Assembly: GCA_002269645.1 (NCBI GenBank)
Contig: NIVC01004560.1
Coordinates: 1-41,941, forward strand
DNA length: 41,941 nucleotides
Source: Macrostomum lignano
Lineage: Eukaryota
Direction: 5' to 3'
The position numbers and the translations under genes were made by a program. A model generated the notes under the pieces. That model was not told the origin of the DNA, ran no database searches, and saw only the letters and a program-made list of their open reading frames with translations. This document shows positions 139-37,963 of the stretch, in pieces (position 1 is the first letter of the stretch; each line of letters opens with the position of its first letter).

Positions 139-3100
139 ATTATTGCCTACAACCCGGCCTCAGGATCTCGGGTCACTCCTCAATGACACGGCGGAAATTC
201 AAATCAGCGTCACGGATGTCAATGACAATGCGCCAGTGTTCACGCAGAGTAAGGCCCGAATTCTTACGCTGTTATTAGCATTGGTTTTACATGCTAAATG
301 AGAATTTTTCCAGCACTTTTTAAGACTGAGATTGTTGTTTAATAAATCGACTTTAAACCTTTGAGAACGTCTTGCAAGCAGAGTGAGAATAGTAGCAGAC
401 AGAACTGCTACTTATAGCTGTTATAATACTATGCACATGCAACAGTTGCCCGTTGCCCCGCCATGAAAGCTTTTCGCAATCACAATCAATATTCTCTACT
501 AATAAGTAGACAAACCCAGACAGACAACTCGGCAGCATTAAACCTATATTTGAGTAATAGCTCGTACATTTAACTGCCGGCCGTAATCAACGTGCAAGCG
601 CGATTGCCGCTAAGTTGCTCTGCTGAGTTGGTCTCAGATTGCGGTGAAAATGTCTCACCTACAAAAACCATTATTACAGCATACTTTATTACTATTGTCC
701 AGTTAGTTTGGCTGGGTATAACTTTTCGTTGATGAAATCCTATTGCAGCTCAATACGATTTCTCAATAAATGAGACGCAATCGATCGGTTCCGTCATCAG
801 CACGGCGATACGCGCCACAGACAATGATTCAACGCCGGATACAACCGCGGCGGTTTTTTACGAGCTTCGTCCCTCTGGCGGGCCATTCGCCATCGACAAC
901 GCCACCGGCAGCTTCAGTTTGGCGTCGTCCGTCAGCAGAGACGACGGCGGTTCTGCCGTGCACACTTTGCAAGCGGTTGCCATCAATCTGGAGGCCACGC
1001 CGCAACTGTCAGCCGTAGTTACGGTCACTGTACGCGTCGCTAATGTCAATAACAATCCGCCCGTATTCTCCGCCAGTTTGTACAACTTTAGCGTGACTGA
1101 GAATGCGCCCTTGAGGACAAGTGTCGGCACTCTGGCCGTCACTGATCGCGACGGGGATGCCGTTACGATGACAGTCTTAAGTGGAGGTGCGCATTTTAGT
1201 CAATTGTTGAAACTGTCATAATGCTTTTCTTACGACACCAAGGAGTGAAGAATGACATTTAAATTTTTTTCAGACATGTTCCTTGTCGATTCGACTTCTC
1301 TGCTCACCAATGCTAGCATTGATCGAGAGAGTCTGATGGAGAATCCCATCGTACTCGTTGTGCAGGCCAGTGACGGCAGGTACCAGACGAACACTACAGT
1401 TCGAGTGACAGTCACAGATTTGAATGACAATGCGCCACAATTTTTACCGGCGGTTAGCGAGCTAACAGTTAGCGTTCAAGAAGCCGCGCCGAATGGGACT
1501 TCGGTTGTTAAGGTAAAAGCCATGTAGGGAGGCTTATTGGGACTCTGGAGCATATTTAACGTTGCGACTAAATCGATCCAGACGACCAAAATTCAAGCCC
1601 AGAATCTCTGGTACACAAAACAGAAAAATGTTCATTTTTCTTACTTTTTTCATTTCATTTTAGCTGAATTCAACAGACCCAGACGCTGGCCAGAATGGCA
1701 ATGTCACCTACAGCATCTTGACTGTCAACAGCCCGTTTAAAATCAACGCTTTGACAGGCGAGATCACCGTTGCCAATGGAAACCTGCTCGATTACCAGAA
1801 ACAGGCAGAGATTCCAATCTTAGTAGTGGCCAGTGACAGGGGTCAGCCGGTGCAATCTACAATGCTGACGTTGAAAGTTCAGCTAACCGATTCCAATGAC
1901 AAACCGGTAGTTTTCAATCCCAAAGTCTACACGGCAACTGTGCAGGAAAATCAGAGTCCCGGTCAGTTCGTCACCAGACTTTTTGCAAGTGATGCAGACA
2001 CAGTCCCGGCTGGCTTCAACTTTTCGTTGCCCGTAGCAGCAGATGCAAGCCTCTTTTATCTAGTCAATGCAACAATGACGAAAACAATCAGCTTACTGCT
2101 CAACGAATCTCTAGATAGAGAGCGGCAGAGCCTCTACTCAGTGACAGTCAGCGTCACTGACGGTCTGTTCAACGATTCGGCTATAGTTAATATAACTGTA
2201 GGAGATGAAAACGATAATCCGCCAACATTTCAAAAAACAGCCTATACGTTCTTTGCGGACGAGCAAGCTCCAAACGGTCAGGTTGTAGGCAGCGTAAAAG
2301 CCACCGATGCCGACATAGGATTCAATGCTCAGGTAAACTATTTCATTTCTGGCGGACAGGATAAGTTTGCTATCAACTACTCAACCGGAGAGATTTCTGT
2401 TCGAGCGTCAATAAATGGAACAGCTGGAACAAAATACGATATTATTGTGACGGCCCGCGATCAGGGAACGCCGTCTCTAAGTGGCACAACAACCGTGACG
2501 GTCTACGCCAATCAGACCAACTCGAATACTCCGATCTTCTCGCCATCAATCTACACCGTGTCCGTGAACGAGTCGGCTCCGAACAACACCTTACTCGTCA
2601 CTGTCAAGGCTACTGATGCCGACTTCCCGTCAGTCAATGGAATCATTTCCTACAGTCTGCTTGAATCGAACTCGACGTCCGGACTGTTCAGCGTCGACTC
2701 ATCGACCGGAGACGTCAGCTTAATCGGCGTGATCGACTTCGAGAAGGTCACGTCCTACACGGTGATCGTATTGGCCATCGACCACGCGGCTGCGCCTCGC
2801 ACGGCTACAGCTCAGATCTTCGTACAGGTCTTGAATGAGGACGACACACCGCCTGAGTTCGTTCCCAACTCCTACTTCTTCTATGCACCTCAAAATGCGA
2901 CAGTCGGATTCGCAGTCGGATCTGTGATTGCCGTTGATCCCGACTATCCTAGTGCGAATCCTCAACCAGTCAGCTACTCTGCATCGGCATCGGATTTTCA
3001 ACTCAACTCGACCACCGGAGCACTGACGGTTTCTTCGTCTTTGTCTGTCACAAACTACTCTTCGACGCCATCTGCACCGACGCGTCAGCAATGACGGGCA

Positions 3101-6100
3101 ATGCGACAGTCACTGTGTCAGTGATTCCATCGGATGTGTACTATGCGAAGGTACCTCAGTTCTTGTCTACACCTCTTGTAGCATCAGTGTTGGAGAATCA
3201 AACAGCCTACGTGTTTGTGATCGACGTGAATGCCACCATCAACGGCGGAGCAGAAGACGCCGGCGTCTTATACAGATTGGACAGTGGATCGACAATCTTT
3301 AATATCAGCAGTAGTTTGGTGAGTAGTTGAACAGTTTTTTTCCTGCTTGTTGACAGTTCAATAAAATGTCAATTCGTTCTTTATAGGGGATTGTGGAAGC
3401 GAGACCAGAGACGCTTGACAGAGAAGTGAACACCGAGGTAACATTGATCGTAATAGCCGTGAACACGGCCGAGCCGTCGTTCTCGTCGAGTCAGCCGATT
3501 CGAGTTCTGCTGCTCGACATCAACGACAATGCTCCTCGATTTGAGTTCAGTAGAGGCGAGGTACTTTTGTACGAGAATGCGACAGTTCGCCATGTTGTGA
3601 CAGACCTTCAGGCCACCGACCCAGACACTTCCTCAACAAATGTAAGTCACATTCTAGCTGACTATTGAACGAAGTTAAATCGTTTTCAATAACCAAATTT
3701 TAGCTATTATATGTTGTCTTACACTCATTTCAGCTCACATACTCGATTGTGGGCGATAACTCTGGCGGAAAGTTCCGACTTCAGTCGATTGAGCCCAATG
3801 CGTCTCAGCTGATCCTTGACGCTGTAGTTGACTACGAGGCCATGTCTGCTTTGGGATACGCCTACTCTCTCACCGTATGTTGTCTGAATTGCTTGGTGTT
3901 TTTTGTATGATTAGTTTAGTTTTGTACGCATTATACTCACTTTCAGATCGAAGTGAGTGACGGAAGTTTCAGCTCGAACTACTCGCTCATTGTTCGCATC
4001 GGAGACGTCAATGACAATCCGCCAGTGTTCAGTGCTCCGATGTACAACTTCTCTGTGGCGGAGCAGGCCGATGTGGGAACTCTGGTCGGTCGAGTCGTGG
4101 CCACAGACCCGGATACTGTGGATCTGAACAAGCTGGAGTACGCAGTAGTCGACACTGGTAACTTCTCAATGAATGCTTCAACCGGAGTGATTTCGACACT
4201 GACAATATTCGACAGACTCATCACGAGTCGCTTTTCGTTCAACGTTACCTGCACGGACACTGCTGGAAACATTGTATGTCATTGATTTTTTTACTGCTGC
4301 AGCTACTACGCATATTGTATGCTTTGAAAGTGAAACAATCAATTATACTATAAGTCCTGTTTCCACGAATGCAGGGTTGGACGTCTGTCAATGTCGACGT
4401 ACTCGACGTGAACAACTACAGTCCGAACATGACGAACCTACCCACATCATGGAACATCACCGAGAACGCGACCAGCTTGATGCAGAGCTTCGTCATCCAG
4501 GTGGTCGATAACGACTCCGGTCAGAATGCGAACGTATCGCTGAGCATCGTGTCCGGTGACTCGGTCGGCTCGTTCGCCATCAACGGAAGTCGGTCGAAGT
4601 GACAAAAGTTCTGGACAGAGAGACTCCGGGTCTCACTGTGGACTCGTCCGGAAACGGTGTCATCAAGCTTGTCATGAGAGCTGCGGACAATGGAGTTCCA
4701 CCTCGCAGCTCGACAGCCACTCTTACCGTGCTGTTGCAGGACATCAACGACTCGCCTCCGAGGTTCGCCATTCCTGCTGGTCGAGTACTGCAGCAGGCGG
4801 AGAGTCTGCCAGTGAGATCTACCATCGTCACGTTCGACATGCTCGATGCGGACTTGCCGTCATCGAATAACTTCACATTTAGCATCAGTTCGGCTTCTAA
4901 TCCCAACGGTGAGCTGAAATTAATTCTGTTGTTATGTCAAGCTTACTGAAGCGTTATGATTTTCCGCAACTAGTGTATGACTTAATGGTGAAACGTTTGT
5001 TCCGCAAACATTTCAGAGACTTTTGCAATTGATGGAAGCAACCTCGTTCTGAACAAAGCACTGAGCAGAGTCGCAATGCCCACTCACAACCTTACGATAG
5101 TTTGCTTTGATGGAGTTTTCAGTGTTTCTGTAAGTTAGCATATCCGCATAACTTTTGTATTTACTGCCTTTCGTGCATCTTTAATTTTTTTCATATATTT
5201 CAGACTTTTATCTTAGTAACGGTCGTTGACAGCAACAACTACGGTCCAGTATTTACCAGTGCAGTTTACGTGTTCAATGTGACTGAAAATGACCTGTCGA
5301 ATGCGACTGGACAGTTCATTGGAGTCGTGACGGCTGTGGACCGGGACACCGGAGTGAACGGCCAAGTGACATACTCTGTAGCTTCCCCCAGCAGCTTGAA
5401 GACTCTGCTTGCTATTAATGAGGTTAGTTTTTCGTATTTTCAGAGTTTTCAGTCCAAAGCACTTTTACAATTAACGGATCGGCTGGTGAAATATTTAGCA
5501 ACCCGCAAATATTTTAGACTGGAGCAGTTACCTTGAACGGGACAGTGGACAGGGAGACAAACGCAGAGTTGACGTTTTTCATCATGGCCACTGATATGGG
5601 TGCATCTCCAAGATTCGTAAGTTTGCGACAGAGATATGTTTTGTCTGCTGCTATATTAGTGTTAGATTATTCCACTATCGTTTCAATGGGCAGTGATTTT
5701 TCTGTATTTTTTGAGACAAATGATCTACTTCGAGAGATACGCTAATTCAGACAGCGAAGGTTCTAAGTGGACGTTTTTTAAGTATATTTGATTATTTTAA
5801 CGTAATTGTGGTATCCACCGGCTTCAAAATTCAACTCACATTGGTTTATCTTTATTTGTTATATTTAACTGATCTCCATGCACTGTCGAGTAGTCTCGTG
5901 AAAGAAATTTTAACGGCATGGTTCAGTATTCGAAATCTTGCAATGATAGTTCACCAAGCATTTACAGCTAAAGTTAATTCCTCACTTAAAATTACTATCA
6001 GAAACTATTGAGTTCAAAATCGATGTATGGATAGTGACTTTCTTAATACTAGCTCGTATTGGTATCAGCGTACAAAGCCATAAATACGTCAAATACAATT

Positions 6101-9100
6101 ATGTTATCTATAGTACATCATGTGCTGTAAAAATCCCAGCTGCGAAGGAGCAGATTGACTTGCAAGAAAGGATACTGTTAATACGCTCGTACACGGCGGC
6201 AACAAAAACTACGCTATATCATCCTTTTTACGCTCGTAACTATGTCTGCTGCTATAAATATAATCATTTCACTAAAAATGAAAAGAAATTTGAAGTCTAT
6301 GAATCCCAAGTACACATGCAATATTTAGCATTAAATTTTCGGAAAGCATGGTATTCCTAGCATCTCCTAATCGACCTCAATTCCCATTATCACTTGATTT
6401 ATTTATTATAGTTACCTACACTCAAAATGTGAGTGTCAAAATATTTACCTACACTCACGATTCACTAACTACAATCACATCAACTTGTAAATTCACAAAC
6501 TCGTGACGTAAAATATTAATCAGGGAACAGCAGAGCTACACCTGAAAATACTCGACGTAAATGACAACAAGCCGGAATTCACAATGGTCGCATACACTGG
6601 AACCGTTGCGGAGGGGTCATCTGCTGGAGCAGCAGTGAGCTTTGTAAGCCAAACTTCATATAATTTCTTCATATAAAGATATGAAAATAAATACAAAGGT
6701 AAATCAACTATATATTCTACTCGTGTTAGGTAACGGCAATTATAGCAACCGACAAAGACATCGAAAATAACAGCTATGTTGAGTTCTCGCTCTCCGGCCC
6801 TCACTCAAACTGGTTCAGCATTAGCCAGTCCGGTCAGATACAAGTAGCCAGCGGCGCCCTACTCGACCGAGAGAATCAGTCGAGCTTCTCCTTGAATGTG
6901 ACTGCCAACAACACTAGAGGAGAGCCCACCTGGCTTGCAAACTCGGTTCCTGTGACAATCCAGCTGTCTGATATCAATGACAATGCTCCCGTGTTTACCA
7001 AAGCGTCGTTCGACTTCTTCATCGACTTCTTTTCACCTGTAAGCCAAACTTTAGGAGACGTAACCGCCACAGATGCGGATGCTGGATTCAACGCTCAGAT
7101 TACTTACTTCCTCAGAGGAGGGGAGGACCGGTTCGCCATTGACTTCAGAACAGGAGTCCTGACAGTGAGCAAAGCGCTCAACGGGTCTTCGAGCAACGTT
7201 TTTAGTCTTGTTGTTACGGCACGCGATCAGGGAACGCCGTCTCTAAGTGGCACAACAACCGTGACGGTCTACGCCAATCAGACCAACTCGAATACTCCGA
7301 TCTTCTCGCCATCAATCTACACCGTGTCCGTGAACGAGTCGGCTCCGAACAACACCTTACTCGTCACTGTCAAGGCTACTGATGCCGACTTCCCGTCAGT
7401 CAATGGAATCATTTCCTACAGTCTGCTTGAATCGAACTCGACGTCCGGACTGTTCAGCGTCGACTCATCGACCGGAGACGTCAGCTTAATCGGCGTGATC
7501 GACTTCGAGAAGGTCACGTCCTACACGGTGATCGTATTGGCCATCGACCACGCGGCTGCGCCTCGCACGGCTACAGCTCAGATCTTCGTACAGGTCTTGA
7601 ATGAGGACGACACACCGCCTGAGTTCGTTCCCAACTCCTACTTCTTCTATGCACCTCAAAATGCGACAGTCGGATTCGCAGTCGGATCTGTGCTTGCCGT
7701 TGATCCCGACTATCCTAGTGCGAATCCTCAACCAGTCAGCTACTCTGCATCGGCATCGGATTTTCAACTCAACTCGACCACCGGAGCACTGACGGTTTCT
7801 TCGTCTTTGTCTGTCACAAACTACTCCTTCGACGCCATCTGCACCGACGCGTCAGCAATGACGGGCAATGCGACAGTCACTGTGTCAGTGATTCCATCGG
7901 ATGTGTACTATGCGAAGGTACCTCAGTTCTTGTCTACACCTCTTGTAGCATCGGTGTTGGAGAATCAAACGGCCTACGTGTTTGTGATCGACGTGAATGC
8001 CACCATCAACGGCGGAGCAGAAGACGCCGGCGTCTTATACAGATTGGACAGTGGATCGACAATCTTTAATATCAGCAGTAGTTTGGTGAGTAGTTGAACA
8101 GTTTTTTTCCTGCTTGTTGGACAGTTCAATAAAATGTCAATTCGTTCTTTATAGGGGATTGTGGAAGCGAGACCAGAGACGCTTGACAGAGAAGTGAACA
8201 CCGAGGTAACATTGATCGTAATAGCCGTGAACACGGCCGAGCCGTCGTTCTCGTCGAGTCAGCCGATTCGAGTTCTGCTGCTCGACATCAACGACAATGC
8301 TCCTCGATTTGAGTTCAGTAGAGGCGAGGTACTTTTGTACGAGAATGCGACAGTTCGCCATGTTGTGACAGACCTTCAGGCCACCGACCCAGACACTTCC
8401 TCAACAAATGTAAGTCACATTCTAGCTGACTATTGAACGAAGTTAAATCGTTTTCTATAACCAAATTTTAGCTATTATATGTTGTCTTACACTCATTTCA
8501 GCTGACATATACAATTGTGGGCGATAACTCTGGCGGAAAGTTCAGACTTCAGTCGATTGAGCCCAATGCGTCTCAGCTGATCCTTGACGCTGTAGTTGAC
8601 TACGAGGCCATGTCTGCTTTGGGATACGCCTACTCTCTCACCGTATGTTGTCTGAATTGCTTTGTGTTTTTTGTATGATTAGTTTAGTTTTGTACGCATT
8701 ATACTCACTTTCAGATCGAAGTGAGTGACGGAAGTTTCAGCTCGAACTACTCGCTCATTGTTCGCATCGGAGACGTCAATGACAATCCGCCAGTGTTCAG
8801 TGCTCCGATGTACAACTTCTCTGTGGCGGAGCAGGCCGATGTGGGAACTCTGGTCGGTCGAGTCGTGGCCACAGACCTGGATACTGTGGATCTGAACAAG
8901 CTGGAGTACGCAGTAGTCGACACTGGTAACTTCTCAATGAATGCTTCAACCGGAGTGATTTCGACACTGACAATATTCGACAGACTCATCACGAGTCGCT
9001 TTTCGTTCAACGTTACCTGCACGGACACTGCTGGAAACATTGTATGTCATTGATTTTTTTACTGCTGCAGCTACTACGCATATTGTATGCTTGGAAAGCG

Positions 9101-12100
9101 AATCAATCAATTATACTATAAGTCTTGTTCCCACGAATGCAGGGTTGGACGTCTGTCAATGTCGACGTACTCGACGTGAACAACTACAGTCCGAACATGA
9201 CGAACCTACCCACATCATGGAACATCACCGAGAACGCGACCAGCTTGATGCAGAGCTTCCTCATCCAGGTGGTCGATAACGACTCCGGTCAGAATGCGAA
9301 CGTATCGCTGAGCATCGTGTCCGGTGACTCGGTCGGCTCGTTCGCCATCAACGGAAGTCGGGTCGAAGTGACAAAAGTTCTGGACAGAGAGACTCCGGGT
9401 CTCACTGTGGACTCGTCCGGAAACGGTGTCATCAAGCTTGTCATGAGAGCTGCGGACAATGGAGTTCCACCTCGCAGCTCGACAGCCACTCTTACCGTGC
9501 TTTTGCAGGACATCAACGACTCGCCTCCGAGGTTCGCCATTCCTGCTGGTCGAGTACTGCAGCAGGCGGAGAGTCTGCCAGTGAGATCTACCATCGTCAC
9601 GTTCGACATGCTCGATGCGGACTTGCCGTCATCGAATAACCTCACATTTAGCATCAGTTCGGCTTCAAATCTGAACGGTATTTTTAGGCCTAAATCTCAT
9701 GTTTACAAAAATGAAAGTAATGGTATATGCTTGTGTTTTATAGTACATTTTAATTACCTGTCATTTTGCAGATACATTCGCTATCCAAGGCAGTGCATTG
9801 GTTCTTAACAAAGCGCTGAATGTCAGAGTTCAGTCGAGTTACAATCTGACCATTATTTGTTTCGATGGAGTGTTCAGCGTTTCGGTAAGCTGATCGATGC
9901 AGGAGGTCTAAACACGAAAATGTGTAATGTTTGGTGAAACATTTTATTTCTTGCCCACGTCTTTATTTTAGACATACATTAATATTTCAATAGCTACTGG
10001 AGGAGGCAACAACTACAGTCCGAAATTCAGCAGCTCTCTCTACGCTTTCTATGTCACTGAGAACGACCTTTCAAGTGCACTGAACCAATCTATTGGCGTC
10101 GTGAGCGCTGAGGATAGAGATACGGGACTCAACGGGCAGGTTGTGTATTCGATTGCGTCTCCGAGTTCGTTAAAACATCTTTTAGCCATCAATGAGGTAA
10201 TGGGATGAAAGTATTTCAATATTTTTGACAATAAACTTTTGGGAATTCTTGGTCTAAAATGCAGCGCTCGTATAGGATGTATGTCATATCGTTTTAGAAT
10301 GAAATGCTGTATTCGCAGTCTTTTGTTTCAAGTAACGATTTTTATCTGCTTCAGCATTTATTCACAACTAGACGCTTTTATGCGTTGATTACCATCAAGA
10401 TAAAATCCGGTATCCCTATGAGCTTGTTCCTAAAAAACCAGAAGCAAGCAGGACGAACCAGTAAAACTGATACCGCTGCTTACACCCGAATGGGGGGCTG
10501 ATGAATGGTAACCGAGTCCAGAGAAATACCTAGTTGTGTTTTTTATACACAATGTCTGAATAGAGCAGATTCTCACTTCTAATCACGACGCCAACTGTTG
10601 AATATGATTTCTAACCGGTAATGTATTTCCTTGAATCTTTGAAATTGCTGCCTTTCCATGCAAATTGTGCTTTCGGATGGTACGTAGCACTCACTCTACT
10701 TCTTTGCAATTGAATTCGTCAAAACATCAAAACCTTTCATCCACAAATGTTTTCTTTATAGAAGCTAAATTTAGATCATTCCATAGACAGCTGCGTTCAC
10801 GCAGAACGCTTTATCCGGTCCGCAAACGTTTCGTCTCAGCCTAATTGATTTAAGAACGGAGCGACTACGTTTGATGGAATACAACGCGAAACAGTTTCTG
10901 TGCTAGAATGTTAAATACGAGCCTTTGATACACTGGCTAGTCTAGGGGCGAAATGTTTAGCGAACTGAATTAAACATTTTGCGAGAACGCAGCTGTCTAT
11001 GGCTTGATCTAAATTTAGCTCCTACTTTGAAAACATCCGTGATTTTGCAGTCTGGACGAATTCAATTGCAAAAAAAATATTTAAGGAGATGAAGTCGAGA
11101 ATTCCTATTTGCTGCAGCAGCTAAAGAAAAAAACTGCACTCGAATATAGACAATAAAGTCAATCCGGCTAATAAAGAGCCAATCAATCAGACAGCTCGCA
11201 ATTCAAAGCTGCACTCTCCCAGCCACAGATTTTATAATACAAGCCTAGATGGGCCAGCTGTCTGATGGCAGTGCGAAAACCCCGGGGTTAAGACCATAGA
11301 CTGTAGCTTCTGCTGTTCTCAAGACTCGAATGCTTGAGTACCACGTCTAGGTAATATAGAATCAGTGCTCCCAACAGACTGCAAGCTAAATCAGCCATTT
11401 ATAGCACTTCTCTCTGGTTTAAAGACAATTAAGTAGAAAATTTCAAACCGAATACTGAAGTATTCTTGCTCCAGAACTTGATTTCTACATTTGGTGCTGA
11501 CTTTTATTGAAATTATCCACTTGACTGACTTTTGTCAATATGATTGGCTTCATTGTATACTCGTATAATCTATGGAAGTGGCTGCTGCTTCTGCAGCAAA
11601 AGAGAACTATCGACTTAGATGGCTTGCTTATCTACTTGACTGACAAAGTAACATTACTGCATGATGCTACACCCTTGAGGGCCTTTCGTAATCAAAAGTA
11701 TAAAATTAAAAAATTCAGGTTATTAATTACGGCGTCCCGATTACATCTTTATTAAAAATCTGTCCTTCGCATTTACCAGAACGGAACGGTCACCCTAAAC
11801 GGTACAGTGGATCGAGAAGCGACTCCGAAGCTCACATTGTTTCTTCTAGCTTCGGACTTGGGCACACCGCCTAGAATGGTGAGAACGGGAATTCAGGAAA
11901 TCTTATTCAATATTAAATGAACGAGGCATTAATTACTACTGACAAGCCTTTGTTTAAATGCAGGATACAGCCGAGCTGCAACTTACAGTACTCGATGTCA
12001 ACGATAACAGGCCCGAATTTACCGCTGCTGCATACACCGGATCTGTTCCGGAGGGATCAACTGCTGGTGTGACAGTTAGCTTTGTAAGTTTAATAGAAAA

Positions 12101-15100
12101 GTATCGGCATTCAACTTGAACTCCCAGTGCGAATCACAAAAAAATATTGGAAAATTTCACTTAAAAATTACCTGTGTTGCAATTAAATATGCAAAAGTTT
12201 CTATCCAATTTTTGCATTTTTATTATCAATTTTGTAGATTACATTCAGAAACATCAATATTCAAATTGAAGCATAATCACAATAAATGCTGTTACGTTAA
12301 ATAGATTTTTCCAGCGTCATATAAATGTATTTGAAATTAATCCTGAACTTGCAGTCAACTGGAATTGATGCACGAGACAAAGACATCGAAAATAACAGCT
12401 ATGTTGAGTTCTCGCTCTCCGGCCCTCACTCAAACTGGTTCAGCATTAGCCAGTCCGGTCAGATACAAGTAGCCAGCGGCGCCCTACTCGACCGAGAGAA
12501 TCAGTCGAGCTTCTCCTTGAATGTGACTGCCAACAACACTAGAGGAGAGCCCACCTGGCTTGCAAACTCGGTTCCTGTGACAATCCAGCTGTCTGATATC
12601 AATGACAATGCTCCCGTGTTTACCAAAGCGTCGTTCGACTTCTTCATCGACTTCTTTTCACCTGTAAGCCAAACTTTAGGAGACGTAACCGCCACAGATG
12701 CGGATGCTGGATTCAACGCCCAGATTACTTACTTCCTCAGAGGAGGGGAGGACCGGTTCGCCATTGACTTCAGAACAGGAGTCCTGACAGTGAGCAAAGC
12801 GCTCAACGGGTCTTCGAGCAACGTTTTTAGTCTTGTTGTTACGGCACGCGATCAGGGAACGCCGTCTCTAAGTGGCACAACAACCGTGACGGTCTACGCC
12901 AATCAGACCAACTCGAATACTCCGATCTTCTCGCCATCAATCTACACCGTGTCCGTGAACGAGTCGGCTCCGAACAACACCTTACTCGTCACTGTCAAGG
13001 CTACTGATGCCGACTTCCCGTCAGTCAATGGAATCATTTCCTACAGTCTGCTTGAATCGAACTCGACGTCCGGACTGTTCAGCGTCGACTCATCGACCGG
13101 AGACGTCAGCTTAATCGGCGTGATCGACTTCGAGAAGGTCACGTCCTACACGGTGATCGTATTGGCCATCGACCACGCGGCTGCGCCTCGCACGGCTACA
13201 GCTCAGATCTTCGTACAGGTCTTGAATGAGGACGACACACCGCCTGAGTTCGTTCCCAACTCCTACTTCTTCTATGCACCTCAAAATGCGACAGTCGGAT
13301 TCGCAGTCGGATCTGTGATTGCCGTTGATCCCGACTATCCTAGTGCGAATCCTCAACCAGTCAGCTACTCTGCATCGGCATCGGATTTTCAACTCAACTC
13401 GACCACCGGAGCACTGACGGTTTCTTCGTCTTTGTCTGTCACAAACTACTCTTCGACGCCATCTGCACCGACGCGTCAGCAATGACGGGCAATGCGACAG
13501 TCACTGTGTCAGTGATTCCATCGGATGTGTACTATGCGAAGGTACCTCAGTTCTTGTCTACACCTCTTGTAGCATCAGTGTTGGAGAATCAAACGGCCTA
13601 CGTGTTTGTGATCGACGTGAATGCCACCATCAACGGCGGAGCAGAAGACGCCGGCGTCTTATACAGATTGGACAGTGGATCGACAATCTTTAATATCAGC
13701 AGTAGTTTGGTGAGTAGTTGAACAGTTTTTTTTTCGGCTTGTTCGACAGTTCAAAAAAATGTCAATTCGTTCTTTATAGGGGATTGTGGAAGCGAGACCA
13801 GAGACGCTCGACAGAGAAGTGAACACCGAGGTAACATTGATCGTAATAGCCGTGAACACGGCCGAGCCGTCGTTCTCGTCGAGTCAGCCGATTCGAGTTC
13901 TGCTGCTCGACATCAACGACAATGCTCCTCGATTTGAGTTCAGTAGAGGCGAGGTACTTTTGTACGAGAATGCGACAGTTCGCCATGTTGTGACAGACCT
14001 TCAGGCCACCGACCCAGACACTTTCTCAACGAATGTAAGTCACATACTTACTGACTATTGAACGAAGTTAAATCGTTTTCTATGTTTTAGCTATTATATG
14101 TTGTCTTACACTCATTTCAGCTCACATACTCGATTGTGGGCGATAACTCTGGCGGAAAGTTCAGACTTCAGTCGATTGAGCCCAATGCGTCTCAGCTGAT
14201 CCTTGACGCTGTAGTTGACTACGAGGCCATGTCTGCTTTGGGATACGCCTACTCTCTCACCGTATGTTGTCTGAATTGCTTTGTGTTTTTTGTATGATTA
14301 GTTTAGTTTTGTACGCATTTACTCACTTTCAGATCGAAGTGAGTGACGGAAGTTTCAGCTCGAACTACTCGCTCATTGTTCGCATCGGAGACGTCAATGA
14401 CAATCCGCCAGTGTTCAGTGCTCCGATGTACAACTTCTCTGTGGCGGAGCAGGCCGATGTGGGAACTCTGGTCGGTCGAGTCGTGGCCACAGACCCGGAT
14501 ACTGTGGATCTGAAAAAGCTGGAGTACGCAGTAGTCGACACTGGTAACTTCTCAATGAATGCTTCAACCGGAGTGATTTCGACACTGACAATATTCGACA
14601 GACTCATCACGAGTCGCTTTTCGTTCAACGTTACCTGCACGGACACTGCTGGAAACATTGTATGTCATTGATTTTTTTACTGCTGCAGCTACTACGCATA
14701 CATGTATTGTATGCTTGCAAAGCGAATCAATCAATTATACTATAAGTCTTGTTCCCACGAATGCAGGGTTGGACGTCTGTCAATGTCGACGTACTCGACG
14801 TGAACAACTACAGTCCGAACATGACGAACCTACCCACATCATGGAACATCACCGAGAACGCGACCAGCTTGATGCAGAGCTTCGTCATCCAGGTGGTCGA
14901 TAACGACTCCGGTCAGAATGCGAACGTATCGCTGAGCATCGTGTCCGGTGACTCGGTCGGCTCGTTCGCCATCAACGGAAGTCAGGTCGAAGTGACAAAA
15001 GTTCTGGACAGAGAGACTCCGGGTCTCACTGTGGACTCGTCCGGAAACGGTGTCATCAAGCTTGTCATGAGAGCTGCGGACAATGGAGTTCCACCTCGCA

Positions 15101-18100
15101 GCTCGACAGCCACTCTTACCGTGCTTTGCAGGACATCAACGACTCGCCTCCGAGGTTCGCCATTCCTGCTGGTCGAGTACTGCAGCAGGCGGAGAGTCTG
15201 CCAGTGAGATCTACCATCGTCACGTTCGACATGCTCGATGCGGACTTGCCGTCATCGAATAACTTCACATTTAGCATCAGTTCGGCTTCTAATCCCAACG
15301 GTGAGCTGAAATTAATTCTCTGTTATTATGGCAAGCTTACTGAAGCGTTATGATTTTCCGCAACTAGTGTATGACTTAATGGTGAAACGTTTGTGCCCCA
15401 AACATTTCAGAGACTTTTGCAATTGATGGAAGCAACCTCGTTCTGAACAAAGCACTGAGCAGAGTCGCAATGCCGACTCACAACCTTACGATAGTTTGCT
15501 TTGATGGAGTTTTCAGTGTTTCTGTAAGTTATCATATCCGCAGAACTTTTGTTTTGACTTTCTTTCGTGCATCTTTAATTTTTTTCATATATTTCAGACT
15601 TTTATCTTAGTAACGGTCGTTGACAGCAACAACTACGGTCCAGTATTTACCAGTGCAGTTTACGTGTTCAATGTGACTGAAAATGACCTGTCGAATGCGA
15701 CTGGACAGTTCATTGGAGTCGTGACGGCTGTGGACCGGGACACCGGACTGAACGGCCAAGTGACATACTCTGTAGCGTCGCCCAGCAACTTGAAGACTTT
15801 GTTGGCTATTGAGAAGGTGCTTTTTGGACTAAAGGGCATGTCAACTTAAGCTCATAAAATGGAGCCCGAGTAACATATGTACACAAATGATACGTCATTC
15901 TGCTCACACCAGAAAGCGGGGTTTGGCAAAAAATGAAAAATATTAGAGTTGGGAGAACAAGCAAGGGGATAATTAGGTACTCTTATGTTAACTTGAGCTC
16001 ATAGAGTAGAGTCTCTATAACTATCCCCTTGTTGTTTCTTATCTATCCAAAGTCCAATTTTTGGCAACTTTTTGCCAAACCCAGCCAGAATGACGTATCA
16101 TTTGTGTACGTAGGTTACTCTGACTCTACTTTATGAGTCTAAGTTAACAGGCCCATTTCCTTTTTCTATTCGTTTTACTGCCATATTCTACAAAGTATCA
16201 TATTTTGGTGGTTTCAGAACGGTACTGTGACCTTGGATGGAACAGTGGATCGAGAGACAAACGCCCAGCTTACTTTCTTTATCATGGCTGCAGACATGGG
16301 CGTTTCTCCGCGATATGTACGAGCTATGTTTGATGTTGAATATGATGTACTTTAATATAAAATACGTGATACTAGAAGTGATTTATTGATACTTTTTATA
16401 TTTTTAGGTGGCAATGAAGATAAAAGAAAAAATATACAATTGGTTTAGTTTTAAAAATGAACGTAAATCACGTTCACTACTGATTAATATCTATAATATA
16501 CCTTAAAATCACTATTTACATTTCACTGAAACGAAACGTCGTCTCACGAAACATCATAGCATTTGTTGCTTACGTGTAGGAAAATATTCATTGGCTTACA
16601 CATCCCCTAAGTCATTCTATTTTAAGGGACATATGCAGCCATAGGTTATAACTTTTAAATGGCCTCGTTGGATTACGATAATAAAAATATGCATCTTCAA
16701 ACTCAATCTTTTTGCTTGTTTATCCAGGGTTCAGCTGAGCTGCAACTAAACATCCTTGATGTGAACGATAATGCTCCGGAATTTACTGCAGCACAGTACA
16801 CTGGTTACGTTGCGGAGGGCTCGCCAAATGGCACGATAGTCAGTTTCGTAAGTGCTCAATATACGCTCGTATGCTGATTTTCCGAATCGTTTTCTAATAA
16901 AATCATGCTCTCAGTTTATCGAGAATGTTTTTACTAATTTCAACAGTCGCCGCCTGTGCAAATATCCGATCGCGACATTGGCAACAATGCCTACGTCGAA
17001 TTTTACCTGACCGGTCTGTCAGCGAGCCAATTCCGAATCAACCCCACCTCCGGCCAGATTGAGGTGGCGTCTGGTGCTGTGCTCGACAGAGAGACTCAGC
17101 CCGTTCTGAGCTTTGCTGTGGTTTCCAACAACACTAAAGGACAGCCAGGTTGGCTCAGCCAGACAGTTAACATAACTATCCAGCTCAACGACATCAACGA
17201 CAATGCTCCGGTGTTTTCTACATCGTATGCTTTCTCGATTCTTGAAAATGCTACCGTTATGTCAACCGTTGGCCGGGTTGAGGCCACCGACGCGGATCTG
17301 GGCGACAATGCAACAGTCATGTACGGCATCGCTGGAGGTGCCGATGGCCGATTTGAAATCCAAGTCAGCAGCGGCGAGATCCGACTGTCCGGCAGCCTGG
17401 ATCGGGAGACTAAAGATTTTTATCAACTGAACGTAACCGCAACTGATAGAGGCTCTCCGTCGAAGCAGAACTCATTGATAGTCAATATCACCGTACTAGA
17501 CGTAAACGACGTCGTCCCAAGCTTTGGCATTCCTTCGACAGACGCTGTTACCTTTACAGTGCCCGAGGAACAGTCAGTGCCGCAGACAATCGGCCGAGTC
17601 AATGCAAGCGACGCTGACCTGGGTGAAAATAGCCGATTAACCTACCTGATTGCGAATGCGTCCGTGCCATTCAACATCACGTCCGATGGAGTTGTCCAGT
17701 CAAGCGGTCTTCTTGATCGGGAGTCCATATCCCGCTACAGATTCGTGTGTACGCTAGCGACGCTGGATTCCCATCACTGACAGGCTCAACAGTTGTAGCC
17801 GTTCAACTGACGGACATCAATGACTGGAGTCCAGAGTTTTCGCAGCCAATCTACCAGACATTTACGTTGGAGAAGGCACCTATTGGCACTGTACTTGCAA
17901 TCGTGGCTGCTACTGACAAGGACATAGGCGCCAATGCAAATCTTACTTATTACCTGCAAGGGAACGGGTCCGAATACTTATCAGTTGATCCATTGACTGG
18001 ATTTGTAAGCATTAAACGTACAATAACCATAAACGAACTGCTTAGCAAGGGTTTGATATCACGGAATTCCTCATCTGGAAATGAAACGGTATACAGTCCT

Positions 18101-21100
18101 CTGGTACTACAGGTAAGTACGTTGTGAATATTTTATATGATACAAGTGGTCGGAAGTATAAATATTTAATTCAATACTGAATCCTATTTTTAGCTATTGG
18201 CATTCGACAATCCAGTTGATACAAGCAAAAAACTGAACGGCACAGCTCAACTATGGATCACTTTGACGCAGGTTTCAGACAGTTTGCCGACTTTCACTGC
18301 GGCCAGTTATTCTTTCAGCGTAAACGAAAACTCGCCAGCGGGCACCCCCGTTGGCTCTGTGTCCGCGTCGGTTGTTGGAACGTCAATAGTTGTTAAGTAC
18401 AAACTGGACACGACTAATTCGCTGTTCCAGATCGACGAATTAACTGTAAGTTTTGAACTCATTGTATCAGTATACCAATTTTCGGTTCTGAAATTCTACC
18501 ACGAACATACCTTCCTTCCAGGGCAACATCACCGTTCAAATGGGGGCTGCACTAGACAAAGAGAACACAAGTTTATCAAGTCAACTTTCTCTGACGGTAT
18601 TAGCGTTCACCGATACCGTGCCGTCAAGGCAGAGCTATGGAGCGGTAAGTAGCTTAAGACATTAATTAAAATATACCGGATTTAGGATTTTTTAAAGTAC
18701 ATGTAACTCAGTTCATTTCATCGCTCGTAATTTAATACATCTATTAAACCAAATTTTGAATATTTTCAGTGCACGGTAAGTACTCACTGTAGCAGTTCTG
18801 GAAAGGTGTCTGCTGCTATTGTATGTGCAAAACCATGCGTCCTTGAAACGTGAAAAAACTTTCCAAAACCTACACATGCTATCCTCTTATAATTGTCAGT
18901 GACTTTCTTGCAAAAAAATTTCTGTTATTGACACTCTACCAGTAGATAGGCTTAAGTACTCCACGAACTGCTTTGAAGTGGTATCTGGTCTTTCATTTAT
19001 TATACCCATTTATTTTGTCAAGTCCAAAACTTTGTCCTCGATACTTTATTAGTAACAATCAAAATATAATAAATGCTCGTATCTGCATTTAAAAATACTC
19101 AAAGCTGCATCAACTAATGAAGCAAAAAGTGAAGAGATCGAGTATATTACCAGTAGATGCCTGTATTAAAGAAAACGTCTTGTTACACGGACTTTAAGCT
19201 GTACAAAAACTAAGCCAACTACCGACTTCAATTCAAACATTTAAAGGTGCGCATCACTCTGACTGACGTCAACGACAATCAGCCGGTGTTTTCTCAGGCC
19301 AGTGGTTACTCTTTCGTTGTCGCGGAAGAGCTCACGGAGCCTGTGAGGATCGGCGCGGTCTCTGCCACCGATGCAGACTCTGGAAACAACGCGTTAATTA
19401 GCTACAGCATCGTTGGTGGCAATACAGCCGGCGTCTTTGCTCTCAACAGCACTACTGGCGAACTGACAGCCGTGTCTAGAATCGACAGAGAAGCCGTCGC
19501 CGTCTACTTGCTTCAGATTGCCGCAATCGACAATGGGAGCCCGACAAGACTCAGCTCAACAGTCTCGGCCACAGTATCCTTGACTGATGTGAACGACAAC
19601 GCGCCGGTGCTGTCTATCGGCAGTGCACTAGACTTGAACGTGACCGAGGGCTACGGTCCTGGCTACTTAGCTGCAGTTGTGACCGCCACCGATGCGGACC
19701 TCGGACTGAATGGCAGCGTCAACTTTGACCTCATTCAAACTGACGTGCCACCAATGTTTTACATCACGTCAAATGGTGAGGCTAAAATTGTTGTTTTAAA
19801 ATTTATTAGAACAAATGGATTTGCCATTTACAAAGCTTTTATGAAACGTATGGCGTTTTTCAGGAACCGGCTCTGTGCTGTTAAAAACACTGGGTACCCT
19901 GAACTATGCCTTGAGGACATCCTACCAGCTGACTATCATAGCTTACGACCTCGGCAATCCAGTTCAGTCCTCCAATGCTACAATCGAAGTTTCAGTCATC
20001 AAGTTCGACACTAACCGGCCCCGATTTACCAGCGAATTTTTCAACACAAGCATCGCGGACAATCTGCTCCGAATACGCCAATCTTCGATTTGCCAGCCGG
20101 CCCTCGGCCGTTCAACTACACAATTATAGATGGAGACTCAAACGGCGCATTTTCCATCACGAATCAAGGGAGAATATCAATCACAAAAGTGTTAGCTCCG
20201 CCGTTGCCTCGGGTCTACACGCTCAAAATTTCGGCCACGGACGAGCTGAACAACACAGCCAGTACCATCCTACAGGTGTGGCTAACGTCACCAACCACGG
20301 CGGTGTTCAATACGACTGACGTCACTTTGTCCTGGAACGAGGATCACGGCTCTGGACGCGAGCTGGTGTACGACTTCGCCACAGTGGACGAACTGCTTGG
20401 CAGAACGGTTCAATACGTTATTCAAACGTGCTCACCTATCGGCTGCGAATCCTTGTTTTCCATTGACCCAGCAACTGGTCAGTTCTACGTGATGAGCAGC
20501 CTCGACCGGGAGACCGTGAGCAAATATTCCTTTGTGATACGCGCCAATCTGCCAGGAAGTAGCGGAGGTTCATCAGGCAGGCGCCGAAGGCAGGCCATCG
20601 CTCCACCAACGACCGACACGTCATCAGTGACGTTGACAGTAACGGATGTAAACGACAATCCTCCAGTTTTTAACGTTCCTAGCCCTTTCAGAGTTGGAAT
20701 TCTCATCAACTCACCTGTAGATACGCTGGTTTACACACCAAGTGTAAGTGAATAACCAAGAAGTTGTCATTTTTACGTACGAGATCCAAGATCCCAGATC
20801 CTAGATCCCAGATCCTAGATCCCAGATCCTAGATCCCAGATCCTAGATCCCAGATCCTAGATCCCAGATCCTAGATCCCAGATCCTAGATCCCAGATCCT
20901 AGATCCCAGATCCTAGATCCCAGATCCTAGATCCCAGATCCTAGATCCCAGATCCTAGATCCCAGATCCTAGATCCCAGATCCTAGATCCCAGATCCTAG
21001 ATCCCAGATCCTAGATCCCAGATCCTAGATCCCAGATCCTAGATCCCAGATCCTAGATCCCAGATCCTAGATCCCAGATCCTAGATCCCAGATCCTAGAT

Positions 21101-24100
21101 CCCAGATCCTAGATCCCAGATCCTAGATCCCAGATCCTAGATCCCAGATCCTAGATCCCAGATCCTAGATCCCAGATCCTAGATCCCAGATCCTAGATCC
21201 CAGATCCTAGATCCCAGATCCTAGATCCCAGATCCTAGATCCCAGATCCTAGATCCCAGATCCTAGATCCCAGATCCTAGATCCCAGATCCTAGATCCCA
21301 GATCCTAGATCCCAGATCCTAGATCCCAGATCCTAGATCCCAGATCCTAGATCCCAGATCCTAGATCCCAGATCCTAGATCCCAGATCCTAGATCCCAGA
21401 TCCTAGATCCCAGATCCTAGATCCCAGATCCTAGATCCCAGATCCTAGATCCCAGATCCTAGATCCCAGATCCTAGATCCCAGATCCTAGATCCCAGATC
21501 CTAGATCCCAGATCCTAGATCCCAGATCCTAGATCCCAGATCCTAGATCCCAGATCCTAGATCCCAGATCCTAGATCCCAGATCCTAGATCCCAGATCCT
21601 AGATCCCAGATCCTAGATCCCAGATCCTAGATCCCAGATCCTAGATCCCAGATCCTAGATCCCAGATCCTAGATCCCAGATCCTAGATCCCAGATCCTAG
21701 ATCCCAGATATAACAGAAGCATACAATTATTTCATCCGTCTGCCTACAGGCAACCGACAGAGACTCGACTTCGGTGCTGACCTACTCACTGTCAAATTTG
21801 ACTGACCAGTTCTACATCAATCTGAACAGCGCAGAGCTTCGCACCCGAGCCACATTCTCGTCCTCGGCCAGCACCCCAATTGTGGGCGTCGAGGTGACGG
21901 ACGGAAAGTTCAACGCGTCGATGGTGATTGTTGTGACCTTGCTGACTAGTACTAACAGCCTGGTTTTGACTGCCGGCATAACGCCGGAGGTTTTCAACCG
22001 GTACGAATCACTGATCAAGACCAATTTGTCGGCACTGTTGGGTGTCGATTTTCGCGTTGCCAAGGTAACATCAGCCGTGTCGGGCAGCGGCGACTCGGCC
22101 AAAGTTGATCCGACAAAAACTGACGCCTACATTTACGCCTACAACCCGACAACTGGCACCCTGATCGAGCAGGCCGAACTTCGACGAATTATCGAAGCGA
22201 AACGCGCAGAAATCGCCGCATTTTTTGCACTGTTTGGCGCCAAAAGCTACGACGGAGTGCGCACTCCCGTACTGACCAGCGGTGGCGGCGTCACCAGCAC
22301 TTCGACGGGACTGACGGCGGCGGAGATTGCGCTGATTGTGCTGGCCTGTCTGATCGTCGTCGCTGCCATCATTGCCATCATTGTGCTGCTGTGCTGGCTG
22401 TCTAAAAGGATCAAGCGTCGCTGGCGTCAACTGGAAGCGGACGAAGCTGCGTCGGCAGCGGCAGCTGGCGGTGGCAGTCGGCTGTACGGCTCGCTGGCTC
22501 CGGAAGTGCTGCAGCTGCAGCGGAAAAAGCAGACGGCTACGGACGGCGGCCGAGTCAACGGCGGAGCAACCACGGGCGAGTTGGAGATCGCAGCGGAGGC
22601 GGCTCCGGCGCCATTGGCGGCGATGGAACTGGTGTCCAATCCGACCTACCAGAGGAATCCGAGCAGGCGGTACCCGCCCAGCCAGTTCGGCTCAGCCTCG
22701 GCTGTAGCAGCCGCTGCCGCCGCGGCCAATGGTGCCGAAAATTTCAACGACGATTCGCCGAGGCGTAGTACAGCGTAAGTGTTTGGGAGTGCTTTGTTGT
22801 TGTTTTTTTGGCTTGGGAAAATTTAAAAAGTACTGTACGAACTTGTACCTATCACATGTTTATCTACAAAATTCTCATGATTTATCTTTGCATCTTCAGT
22901 CGCCAATTATAAACTTTGCACTGTTTAGCCACGGGCTTTTCGAAAGTACCCTCTGGGGTTCCGAGAGTTTACATTAATTTAATGGCCTTTCAACCGTTTT
23001 TTGGTTCAACTCCTTTAAAAAGAGACGAGTATAAATTATAAACGAATTGAAAATCGATGAATTTCAATTTTTCAGGACTCACTTTCACTTCACGGAATTC
23101 TACTTCGATGATAAGTAAATACAATTCATTTGCGTTCTTTAGTGTCTTCTTTTCTGTGTTGATATGTAAGCTATATCTTTGATATTGAGTTATGCAAACC
23201 TATAAACGTTTTATTAGACGTTGACTATATACATTTTGTAGAATGCTTGCCTACTGCTTTTGCTTTCTACTGTTACATAAAAGTTAAGTAGTATGCCATA
23301 GCACATTACGACTTGATAAACTTGAAGTCCAGTTTGTCAGGTTCTGGATTGAAGTACGCAGTTCTTGTGATAATTAGTTTTTAAACCTGCACCACTAAGC
23401 CTATATTTACTGCATATAATAGTTTAGTTGTCGATGTGTTTTATCGATACCAAAGCACTCCCTGAACTCGTACCAACGCGTCTTATTACTCGTAGTAGTC
23501 AATACAAATCAGTAGCTATTAGCGCAAATTAAGCTACACTGAAATAACGCACGAAAAAAAATCCAAAAAGGTTTTCGGACAACGTGTCGGGCACTAGCCT
23601 GTCCAGGATTATGTTTGTACCTGCGGCGTACAACTCGCTCAGCGTTAGCATTGGCCTAAATGCTGAAGAGGCCACAACGTAAGGCGCTGGTCAATAGCTA
23701 GTTTTAACAAATCCTAACAATTTTTTATGCAACTGTCCTAACACTACAGGTAACAAATATCTGTATTTGCAAGCTAAAGATTTTATATCTAAAAATTGAG
23801 GCTAAATAATCTAGTAGCAGCGCACGTTTTCAAATTATCATATTCGACACTCAAGAAGCGACGAGGCTACAAACGAGTTGTTTTTGATCGACCCGTCCGA
23901 AGGAATCGATATTGGATTCACGTAAACTTTTTTTCACAGATAACTTCAGTCAGGTTTCTCTATTGGAATTTTGGGTGTAGAAAATCACTCATTGTTTAGG
24001 GTCATCAAATACCAAGATTTTAACCATTGCATGCTTTCTTAATCATCATTTTTAACGTTGAAAGTAATGTTTCTTCAGTTGGCCTCAAATGAACCTTCTA

Positions 24101-37106: not shown

Positions 37107-37534
37107 ACAGCTTGGCAAACCTGATTGATTTTCCGGGATTTCCCCTGTCCTAGTTGTATTTCTCTAAAATTCTGGAAGATAAATCGAGATTCTAGATAAT
37201 AGCTGCATCTAAGATTAGTTTGTTTTGCTATCGCATTGTACCGTACAATTAATTATTGAAAATTTTAAACCTTTGCTGGCATACGCATATGTTATCTTTG
37301 ACCTTACCTGTTGTTTAATAGGTAAATTATTACTGTATGGAGGTACATGTAGATATAGGCATTTTGACTGTCAACTGTCCACCCCATACAAGCATACGGC
37401 TTTCAAATAATTATGCAACCTTGTGCAAGGGTATGCCGCCTACTTACATGTAAAACTTTGAAATGAGTATTTATTTACGCCACTATCCAAGGGGGGGGGG
37501 CGCGGCCGCGGGAGACCGACAGCGGAGACCGCCA

Positions 37535-37963
37535 CAATTTGCCCGCCAGACAATTTGCCCGCCAGACAATTTGCCCGCCAGACAATTTGCCCGCCAGACA
37601 ATTTGCCCGCCAGACAATTTGCCCGCCAGACAATTTGCCCGCCAGACAATTTGCCCGCCAGACAATTTGCCCGCCAGACAATTTGCCCGCCAGACAATTT
37701 GCCCGCCAGACAATTTGCCCGCCAGACAATTTGCCCGCCAGACAATTTGCCCGCCAGACAATTTGCCCGCCAGACAATTTGCCCGCCAGACAATTTGCCC
37801 GCCAGACAATTTGCCCGCCAGACAATTTGCCCGCCAGACAATTTGCCCGCCAGACAATTTGCCCGCCAGACAATTTGCCCGCCAGACAATTTGCCCGCCA
37901 GACAATTTGCCCGCCAGACAATTTGCCCGCCAGACAATTTGCCCGCCAGACAATTTGCCCGCC
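37535..37963. repeat. 16-bp tandem array (CAATTTGCCCGCCAGA)n, about 27 copies, bracketed by a 15-bp inverted repeat
   Basis: Perfect array. GACCGCCACAATTTG (37527-37541) and CAAATTGTGGCGGTC (37994-38008) are exact reverse complements. Confidence 0.95.

Follow-up and report, generated by a model that had tools for sequence, protein, structure and literature searches.

A giant cadherin gene with a threefold exon block

The stretch of DNA analysed here, hereafter the window, comprises positions 1 to 41,941 of contig NIVC01004560.1 of the Macrostomum lignano assembly GCA_002269645.1, read on the forward strand. An exon model built from GT-AG splice signals and reading frames places on the + strand one very large cadherin gene that is already open at base 1 of the window and reaches at least position 22775. 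Inside this gene a block of nine exons is found three times in tandem, with a central stretch in each copy that is nearly identical to its counterparts and with intervening stretches that have diverged to saturation. The codons from 749 to 22775 form a single open frame of 4,818 codons if a missing base is put back at each of six sites. Every long exon is matched by the Pfam family Cadherin (PF00028), ten Pfam cadherin domains are recognized in each unit (E = 5e-122), and the exon at 21750-22775 encodes a hydrophobic transmembrane helix followed by a cytoplasmic tail. Tandem extracellular cadherin domains followed by a transmembrane helix are the arrangement by which the cadherin superfamily is recognized, and the gene is a giant cadherin, as an initial annotation of the same stretch had proposed.

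The repeat units and their homogenised patches

The repeat unit comprises nine exons, designated E1 to E7 and followed by exons of 99 and 120 nt, with a coding length of 3171 nt per unit that is a multiple of three, corresponds to 1057 residues and is in phase 0 at both its start and its end. Exon sizes and phases are alike in all three units, the E7-size exon measuring 219, 225 and 219 nt in succession. In copy 1 the exons of the + strand lie at 1664-3318 (E1), 3387-3641 (E2), 3734-3874 (E3), 3947-4273 (E4), 4375-4908 (E5), 5017-5129 (E6) and 5204-5422 (E7). Those of copy 2, also on the + strand, lie at 6730-8085 (E1), 8155-8409 (E2), 8502-8642 (E3), 8715-9041 (E4) and 9143-9677 (E5), and those of copy 3, again on the + strand, at 12355-13709 (E1), 13780-14034 (E2), 14121-14261 (E3), 14333-14659 (E4), 14767-15300 (E5), 15411-15523 (E6) and 15598-15816 (E7). 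An unbroken reading frame is present in copy 2 only.

The nearly identical patches were mapped by self-BLAST, repeat finding and a three-way MAFFT alignment, and they are made up of three segments. Segment A is common to copies 1, 2 and 3, segment C (6751-7221 / 12376-12846) is found in copies 2 and 3 only, and segment B (4898-5382 / 15291-15776) is found in copies 1 and 3 only. More specifically, the patch of copy 1 consists of A and B and runs from the 3' part of E1 into E7 (2456-5382, + strand), that of copy 2 consists of C and A and covers E1 to E5 (6751-9666, + strand), and that of copy 3 consists of all three segments in the order C, A, B and covers E1 to E7 (12376-15776, + strand). The patches span 2.9-3.4 kb of units that measure 4.8-5.6 kb.

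The initial annotation had described the centres of the units as nearly identical with their introns included, and the alignment bears this out. On the + strand, identity is 98.06% between copies 1 and 3 (2456-5382 / 12847-15776), 98.56% between copies 2 and 3 (6751-9666 / 12376-15290) and 99.10% between copies 1 and 2 (2456-4897 / 7222-9666), the last comparison containing 19 substitutions and 3 gaps. Synonymous divergence in the core, expressed as the share of synonymous sites that differ (pS), is 0.0077-0.0135, and, when the copies are compared, the four introns within segment A show 95-98% identity. A single position in the 471 nt of segment C distinguishes copy 2 from copy 3, and 12 substitutions in 474 nt of segment B distinguish copy 1 from copy 3.

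The edges of the patches are abrupt. Identity of 98-99% within the patches gives way to 38-55% in the 150 nt just beyond each edge, a step that appears in the per-site comparison of the three units and is completed over a few bases at each of the four edges. All of the breakpoint coordinates given by the initial annotation (2456/7222/12847, 6751/12376, 9666 and 5382/15776) hold, and all four edges are exonic; its description of the breakpoints as mid-exon is accurate only for the first, which lies deep within the long exon E1. The edge at 6751/12376 is situated 21 nt inside the 5' end of E1, the edge at 9666 lies 11 nt before the 3' end of E5, and the edge at 5382/15776 lies 40 nt before the 3' end of E7.

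Diverged junctions and the age of the triplication

Beyond the patches, the units are joined by stretches of the + strand with a very different degree of conservation. Junction 1 (5383-6750) opens with the final 40 nt of E7, continues through the 99-nt exon (5518-5616) and, after an intron of 907 nt, the 120-nt exon (6524-6643), and closes with the initial 21 nt of E1 of copy 2. Junction 2 (9667-12375) contains the terminal 11 nt of E5, a diverged paralogue each of E6 (9772-9884, 113 nt) and E7 (9972-10196, 225 nt), an intron of 1583 nt, the 99-nt (11780-11878) and 120-nt (11964-12083) exons and the first 21 nt of E1 of copy 3, while junction 3 (15777-16946) contains the last 40 nt of E7 and the 99-nt (16218-16316) and 120-nt (16728-16847) exons. 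Exons of 113, 219/225/219, 99 and 120 nt follow one another in identical order and phase at all three junctions. The initial annotation had noted that the 99-nt and 120-nt exons are kept at every junction amid unrelated introns; both points stand, and the match extends to the 113-nt and 219/225-nt exons as well. Between junctions only exon pieces align, at 70-80% identity; the introns do not align, and their lengths at junctions 1/2/3 are 907/85/411, 95/1583/401 and 86/271/99 nt.

The exons of the junctions have a nucleotide identity of 60-73%, a pS of 0.59-0.93, which is saturated, and a nonsynonymous distance (dN) of 0.11-0.27. The E6 paralogue of junction 2, for example, is 63% identical in nucleotides to E6 of copies 1 and 3, with a pS of 0.83-0.87. 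Because the synonymous sites of the junctions are saturated and the junction introns are unrelated, the triplication is ancient, in agreement with the initial annotation.

These values also bear on whether any homogenisation needs to be invoked. Cadherin domains resemble one another generically, unrelated domains within this gene being 25-35% identical in protein sequence, and some similarity in the flanks would be expected even if the centres had been duplicated recently beside exons that are unrelated and only generically similar. The junction exons, however, stand far above this level: in protein sequence the 99-nt and 120-nt exons are 61-72% identical, and E6 and E7 reach 53-55%. In addition, exon sizes, phases and order are the same in the three units, and the patches replace their counterparts exactly in register, which makes a recent duplication of this kind highly improbable.

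Both ends of the array retain traces of the older arrangement. To the right, the start of a fourth unit (16947-17420, + strand) is a diverged paralogue of segment C that was never homogenised. Its exon is 49-58% identical to segment C in protein sequence over approximately the first 120 residues and then falls to a generic 27-36% near the C/A boundary; by tblastn it reaches 40% identity over 270 amino acids, as against 25-35% for unrelated cadherin domains. This restriction of similarity to segment C fits the right edge of an old array. To the left, the sequence that flanks the patch of copy 1 (2295-2455, + strand) corresponds, as a diverged paralogue, to the end of segment C, with 55-66% nucleotide identity over about 150 nt; farther upstream E1 of copy 1 carries an extra cadherin domain and the correspondence to segment C is lost. 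The reading that suits the old array best is X-(A B J C)x3-Y, in which J denotes a junction between units, X the upstream sequence and Y the downstream sequence, and the left patch edge at 2456 is plausibly the edge of the old array itself.

Differences among the centres and selection

The small number of differences among the centres is unevenly distributed. In segment A, copies 1 and 2 differ at 0.57% of exon and 2.1% of intron positions (pS 0.0135, nonsynonymous pN 0.0032), copies 1 and 3 at 0.28% and 4.9% (pS 0.0077, pN 0.0013), and copies 2 and 3 at 0.66% and 3.1% (pS 0.0116, pN 0.0050). In segment B, 10 of 182 intron sites and 2 of 292 exon sites differ between copies 1 and 3. Overall, introns carry copy-specific substitutions at 4-17 times the density of exons. 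The changes among the three copies include 8 nonsynonymous and 9 synonymous ones, for which neutrality predicts a ratio of 3:1 (p = 0.011), and purifying selection has been acting since homogenisation. Because they track exon boundaries and codon positions, the differences between copies are evolutionary changes and not sequencing noise. Likewise, each copy is tied to its own junctions, which have diverged to saturation, and the three copies are therefore separate loci, neither alleles nor a collapsed repeat.

Two local peculiarities were seen among these substitutions. Eight of the 10 intron substitutions that separate copies 1 and 3 in segment B are transversions. At the start of E3 in copy 2 (8504-8513), four substitutions private to that copy fall within 10 nt, three of them synonymous or at third positions and one a replacement of Ser by Thr, and this cluster looks like a single event rather than four independent mutations.

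Frameshifts and the quality of the assembly

The cadherin frame is interrupted by six 1-nt deletions in homopolymers of 2-4 nt, all given here on the + strand. In E1 of copy 1, CC has become C at 3059-3060, and the same deletion is present in copy 3 at 13450-13451, whereas copy 2 is intact at the corresponding position (7826). The other four were overlooked in the initial annotation: GGG has become GG at 4591-4592, which breaks the frame in E5 of copy 1, TTTT has become TTT at 15125-15126, which breaks it in E5 of copy 3, and two further deletions in short homopolymers lie in unique, non-repeated exons at approximately 17744 and 20064. A Macrostomum lignano homologue of the cadherin has an uninterrupted frame across the 20064 site. 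Frameshift density is equal in unique and repeated exons (p = 0.69), and the 4,818 codons contain no stop codon once the frame is restored. The 1-nt deletions are most likely residual indel errors in a long-read assembly. A pseudogene was considered and is less likely, given that the lesions are confined to 1-nt deletions in short homopolymers, occur at equal density in unique and repeated exons, are accompanied by no stops and coexist with the purifying selection described above.

The deletion shared by copies 1 and 3 is a special case. About 120 nt of context on either side of it is identical in all three copies, so that random error cannot explain why two of them have the deletion in common, and it reflects either cross-talk during consensus building or polishing, or a real frameshift that was copied by conversion.

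These deletions provide the argument that the near-identity of the centres might be an artefact of assembly, that is, the result of consensus or polishing cross-talk between copies that are in truth less similar, or of a wrong copy number. With six frame-breaking 1-nt homopolymer deletions, two of them in unique exons, indel errors are indeed probable, and the deletion common to 3059 and 13450 could be cross-talk. Several features of the locus nevertheless make such an origin of the patches improbable. Unique junctions of saturated divergence anchor every copy within 3 kb, and the window is free of Ns. Indel errors are unable to create a step from 99% to 45% identity, and neither can polishing yield a step of that size inside an exon. 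Substitutions are concentrated in introns and the ratio of nonsynonymous to synonymous change is below 1, whereas errors would ignore exon boundaries; the equal density of frameshifts in unique and repeated exons likewise fails to single out the repeats.

Probable homogenisation by copying between units

Taken together, the two kinds of sequence within each unit make it probable that a block of nine exons and ten domains was triplicated within the gene long ago and that its centres have been homogenised in register by conversion between units, a reading that is drawn from sequence comparison. Such a history would begin with an ancient tandem triplication of the nine-exon, ten-cadherin-domain block, with a partial fourth copy after it. 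Non-reciprocal, in-register copying of DNA between the units would then have held a single uninterrupted stretch of each unit, exons and introns alike, in a nearly identical state, and the remaining part of each unit would have diverged to saturation. The likely route is gene conversion in the course of break repair, with a neighbouring unit 4.8-10.4 kb away serving as template.

Every patch would extend outward from segment A and stop where continuous pairing with the partner copy stops, either at the left edge of the array (2456) or with 11-40 nt still to go to an intron in which the copies are unrelated (6751, 9666 and 5382). Limits to pairing of this sort would account for copy 3 having copy 2 as sole partner in its left part and copy 1 as sole partner in its right part, and likewise for the unequal extents of the patches and the position of their edges just within exons. 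The preservation of exon sizes, of phases and of the 3171-nt length points to replacement rather than insertion.

Several expectations of gene conversion are borne out by the locus. Two ages coexist within each unit, with a pS of approximately 0.01 inside the patches as against 0.59-0.93 outside them; introns have been homogenised along with exons in segment A; and replacement has been in register, with copy number, exon structure and frame unchanged. The interpretation offered by the initial annotation was in this sense right in kind, as concerted evolution is what the locus displays and in-register replacement is what gene conversion predicts; its argument from mosaic sites, considered below, is invalid.

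Repeated in-register unequal crossover, by which units would be gained and lost and hybrid units produced without gene conversion as such, would be another route to similar centres. The units are in tandem and in frame, with 3171 nt and phase 0 at both ends, such that an in-register crossover would leave a working gene, and copy 3 is hybrid-like, being similar to copy 2 on its left and to copy 1 on its right. A single crossover between copies 2 and 1 would, however, leave the hybrid lying between the two, with junction 1 duplicated and still highly identical, whereas the hybrid-like copy is the last in the array and the three junctions are all distinct and anciently diverged. For exactly one old junction to remain behind every unit, a number of gains and losses would have had to offset one another, and rounds of crossover are therefore an unlikely explanation, though less so than an assembly artefact. 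Gene conversion fits best as the molecular route.

Several considerations weigh against homogenisation by conversion as set out here. Copy number and near-identity are known from the assembly of one genome alone. Between copies 1 and 3 (2456-5382 / 12847-15776) the introns differ by 5.1% and the synonymous sites by about 0.8%, a contrast that plain conversion over long tracts does not predict. A signal of GC-biased conversion was sought and not found, as GC content at third codon positions (GC3) in the core is 0.60-0.63, within the range of 0.43-0.68 for the unique exons; GC3 of segment B is 0.49 in the converted copy 1 and 0.48 in the unconverted paralogue of copy 2. GC-biased conversion was accordingly rejected as a line of evidence. 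The mosaic evidence for more than one event consists in its entirety of about 30 variable sites in three sequences, and the runs test of clustering loses its significance under a stricter treatment (see below). Lastly, recombination between DNAs that are 60-70% identical is strongly disfavoured, which tells against any variant in which conversion came late.

The contrast between introns and synonymous sites, together with the shared frameshifting deletion, could be taken to mean that homogenisation is biased toward exons and also spreads damage, a frameshift having been passed between modules. Very short conversion tracts or an RNA-derived template might favour exons, or selection might hold the ten-domain modules identical, and under either process a disabling mutation could have been copied from module to module by conversion. 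This version of events is doubtful, about on a par with the assembly artefact.

One event or several

With conversion between units as the preferred reading, it may further be asked whether homogenisation took place once or repeatedly. The initial annotation had argued for recurrent events from diagnostic sites at which two copies agree against the third. Every site that it named is present in the alignment. With three sequences, each two-against-one site is simply the private change of one copy, and a star-shaped history yields all site classes; as proof of recombination, these sites were therefore rejected. The largest class, overlooked at the time, is private to copy 3 and comprises 27 alignment columns.

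Tests of the distribution of the sites are more informative. Private changes in exons and introns number 2 and 7 in copy 1, 9 and 0 in copy 2, and 4 and 8 in copy 3 (permutation p = 0.001). A runs test for clustering of site classes gives p = 0.007, which weakens to p = 0.15 when clustered changes are collapsed. In a GENECONV-type test, the longest shared fragment is one of copies 1 and 2 at approximately 8130-8424, which spans 6 variable sites in a row (p = 0.02). In exons copies 1 and 3 are nearest to each other, in introns copies 1 and 2. The claim that there was more than one homogenisation event retains modest support (p = 0.001 to 0.02, about 30 sites). A specific history of two events, first an exchange between copies 1 and 3 and then one between copies 2 and 3, would make the latter two the closest pair throughout segment A; this was not seen, and that history was discarded.

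As to timing, the analysis leans toward continuous homogenisation since the triplication, the flanks having escaped early after intron rearrangements, because recombination at 60-70% identity is disfavoured. The centres may, in that event, never have diverged, rather than having been converted recently. Late conversion of units that had already diverged, which was the timing favoured by the initial annotation, also fits the data; it requires recombination at such low identity.

Comparison with other modular genes

The triplicate region of nebulin (NEB TRI) and the segmental duplication of titin are blocks whose copy number varies in people (PMC9109913, PMC9142044). As in those genes, a multi-exon block is present three times in the gene of a giant modular protein with very high identity that includes the introns, and there in-register recombination alters the number of protein modules. 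In NEB TRI and titin whole blocks are adjacent and alike, whereas in the cadherin only approximately 52-61% of each unit is homogenised, stretches of 1.4-2.7 kb with unrelated introns and paralogous exons of ancient divergence lie between the patches, and the three patches differ in extent.

The variable exons of the clustered protocadherins undergo region-restricted gene conversion (Noonan et al. 2004, as reviewed in PMC3966226). The likeness is that tandem paralogues of the cadherin superfamily are homogenised over part of the ectodomain with the remainder diverse, which produces a patchwork; the difference is that the protocadherin exons are alternative first exons that contribute to separate isoforms, whereas the units described here are serial in one frame and the tracts include introns. 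In spidroin genes, repeat modules are homogenised within the gene (PMC3933166). The cadherin units share with the spidroin genes and with kringle IV-2 of LPA the property that tandem coding modules within a gene are kept nearly identical by concerted evolution. Spidroin repeats are without introns and are homogenised as a whole, and no old diverged spacers of the same exon structure lie between them. The kringle IV-2 units of LPA are identical throughout and highly variable in number, again without old diverged spacers that share their exon structure.

The present case is clear but ordinary concerted evolution acting on an old triplication. Its value lies in being a clean example within a single gene, in which patches end where the pairing of sister units ends and one old array displays three different patch extents. 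If the assembled arrangement is real, the three tracts of 2.4-2.9 kb at 98-99% identity would be good substrates for in-register recombination that adds or removes exactly ten cadherin domains (1057 aa), and length variants of the adhesion protein would be plausible by analogy with nebulin and titin. The variation of unit number in populations that the initial annotation had deduced would likewise be an analogy with those genes. The region is also a trap for short-read mapping and for gene prediction, and the six homopolymer deletions suggest that polishing is needed before the gene is annotated.

The C-terminal region and relatives of the gene

The C-terminal exon (21750-22775) contains the last cadherin domain, the membrane-adjacent region and the transmembrane helix. 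An exhaustive profile search recovered only distant giant cadherins and one Macrostomum lignano cadherin fragment. The fragment is 47-50% identical to the C-terminal exon, and the C-terminal ends of giant cadherins of 3,000-6,000 aa from scallops, abalone, a nemertean and amphioxus are 30-32% identical to it. A Macrostomum lignano cadherin fragment (P0075) also aligns at 24580-24696 (+ strand), with 61% identity over 41 residues, and the cytoplasmic tail probably goes on in a further exon there, past the apparent stop at 22775. Direct protein searches were less productive, as the C-terminal exon gave no matches and a 401-aa core reading frame matched only generic cadherins (best 39% identical); scans of metagenomes by protein and by exact 32-mer did not find the locus. 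These searches thus turned up neither a close relative of the gene in the protein collections nor a second, independent copy of the locus or of an orthologous unit.

Among the giant lophotrochozoan and amphioxus cadherins that resemble the C-terminal exon are proteins named 'protocadherin Fat 4-like' and 'cadherin-23-like'. In Pfam scans of 19247-22775, cadherin domains and a weak match to PCDH15_12th were the only hits, and neither EGF nor laminin-G domains were detected. Because EGF and laminin-G domains were not found in this interval, identity as a Fat or Fat-like cadherin was ruled out, and the gene is not a true Fat cadherin. The PCDH15_12th match (PF23206, E = 7e-5) lies between the last cadherin domain and the helix; compared with cadherins of the CDH23/PCDH15 type, this membrane-adjacent match is sub-threshold, at 23.2 bits against a cut-off of 27. 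Upstream of the C-terminal exon, a 14-nt minisatellite at 20782-21709 (AGATCCTAGATCCC, 66 copies, 99% matches) takes up most of a 1-kb cadherin intron.

Other features of the window

Scans of the window against Rfam and for tRNAs were empty. A transposon-like reading frame of about 675 residues lies at 32550-34576 on the + strand, with one internal stop at 33606; it has no Pfam match, and over its second half (33608-34576) it shares 64% identity with a Macrostomum lignano protein that carries the name DUF4218-containing. By identity, this match and that of the cadherin C-terminus (47-50%), both to Macrostomum lignano, are the nearest obtained. Three further tandem arrays were recorded, namely a 54-nt unit in 10.7 copies at 29633-30211, a 12-nt unit in 19 copies at 31196-31422 that reads on the - strand as an acidic Glu-Ala repeat, and a perfect array of a 16-nt unit in 27 copies at 37534-37963.

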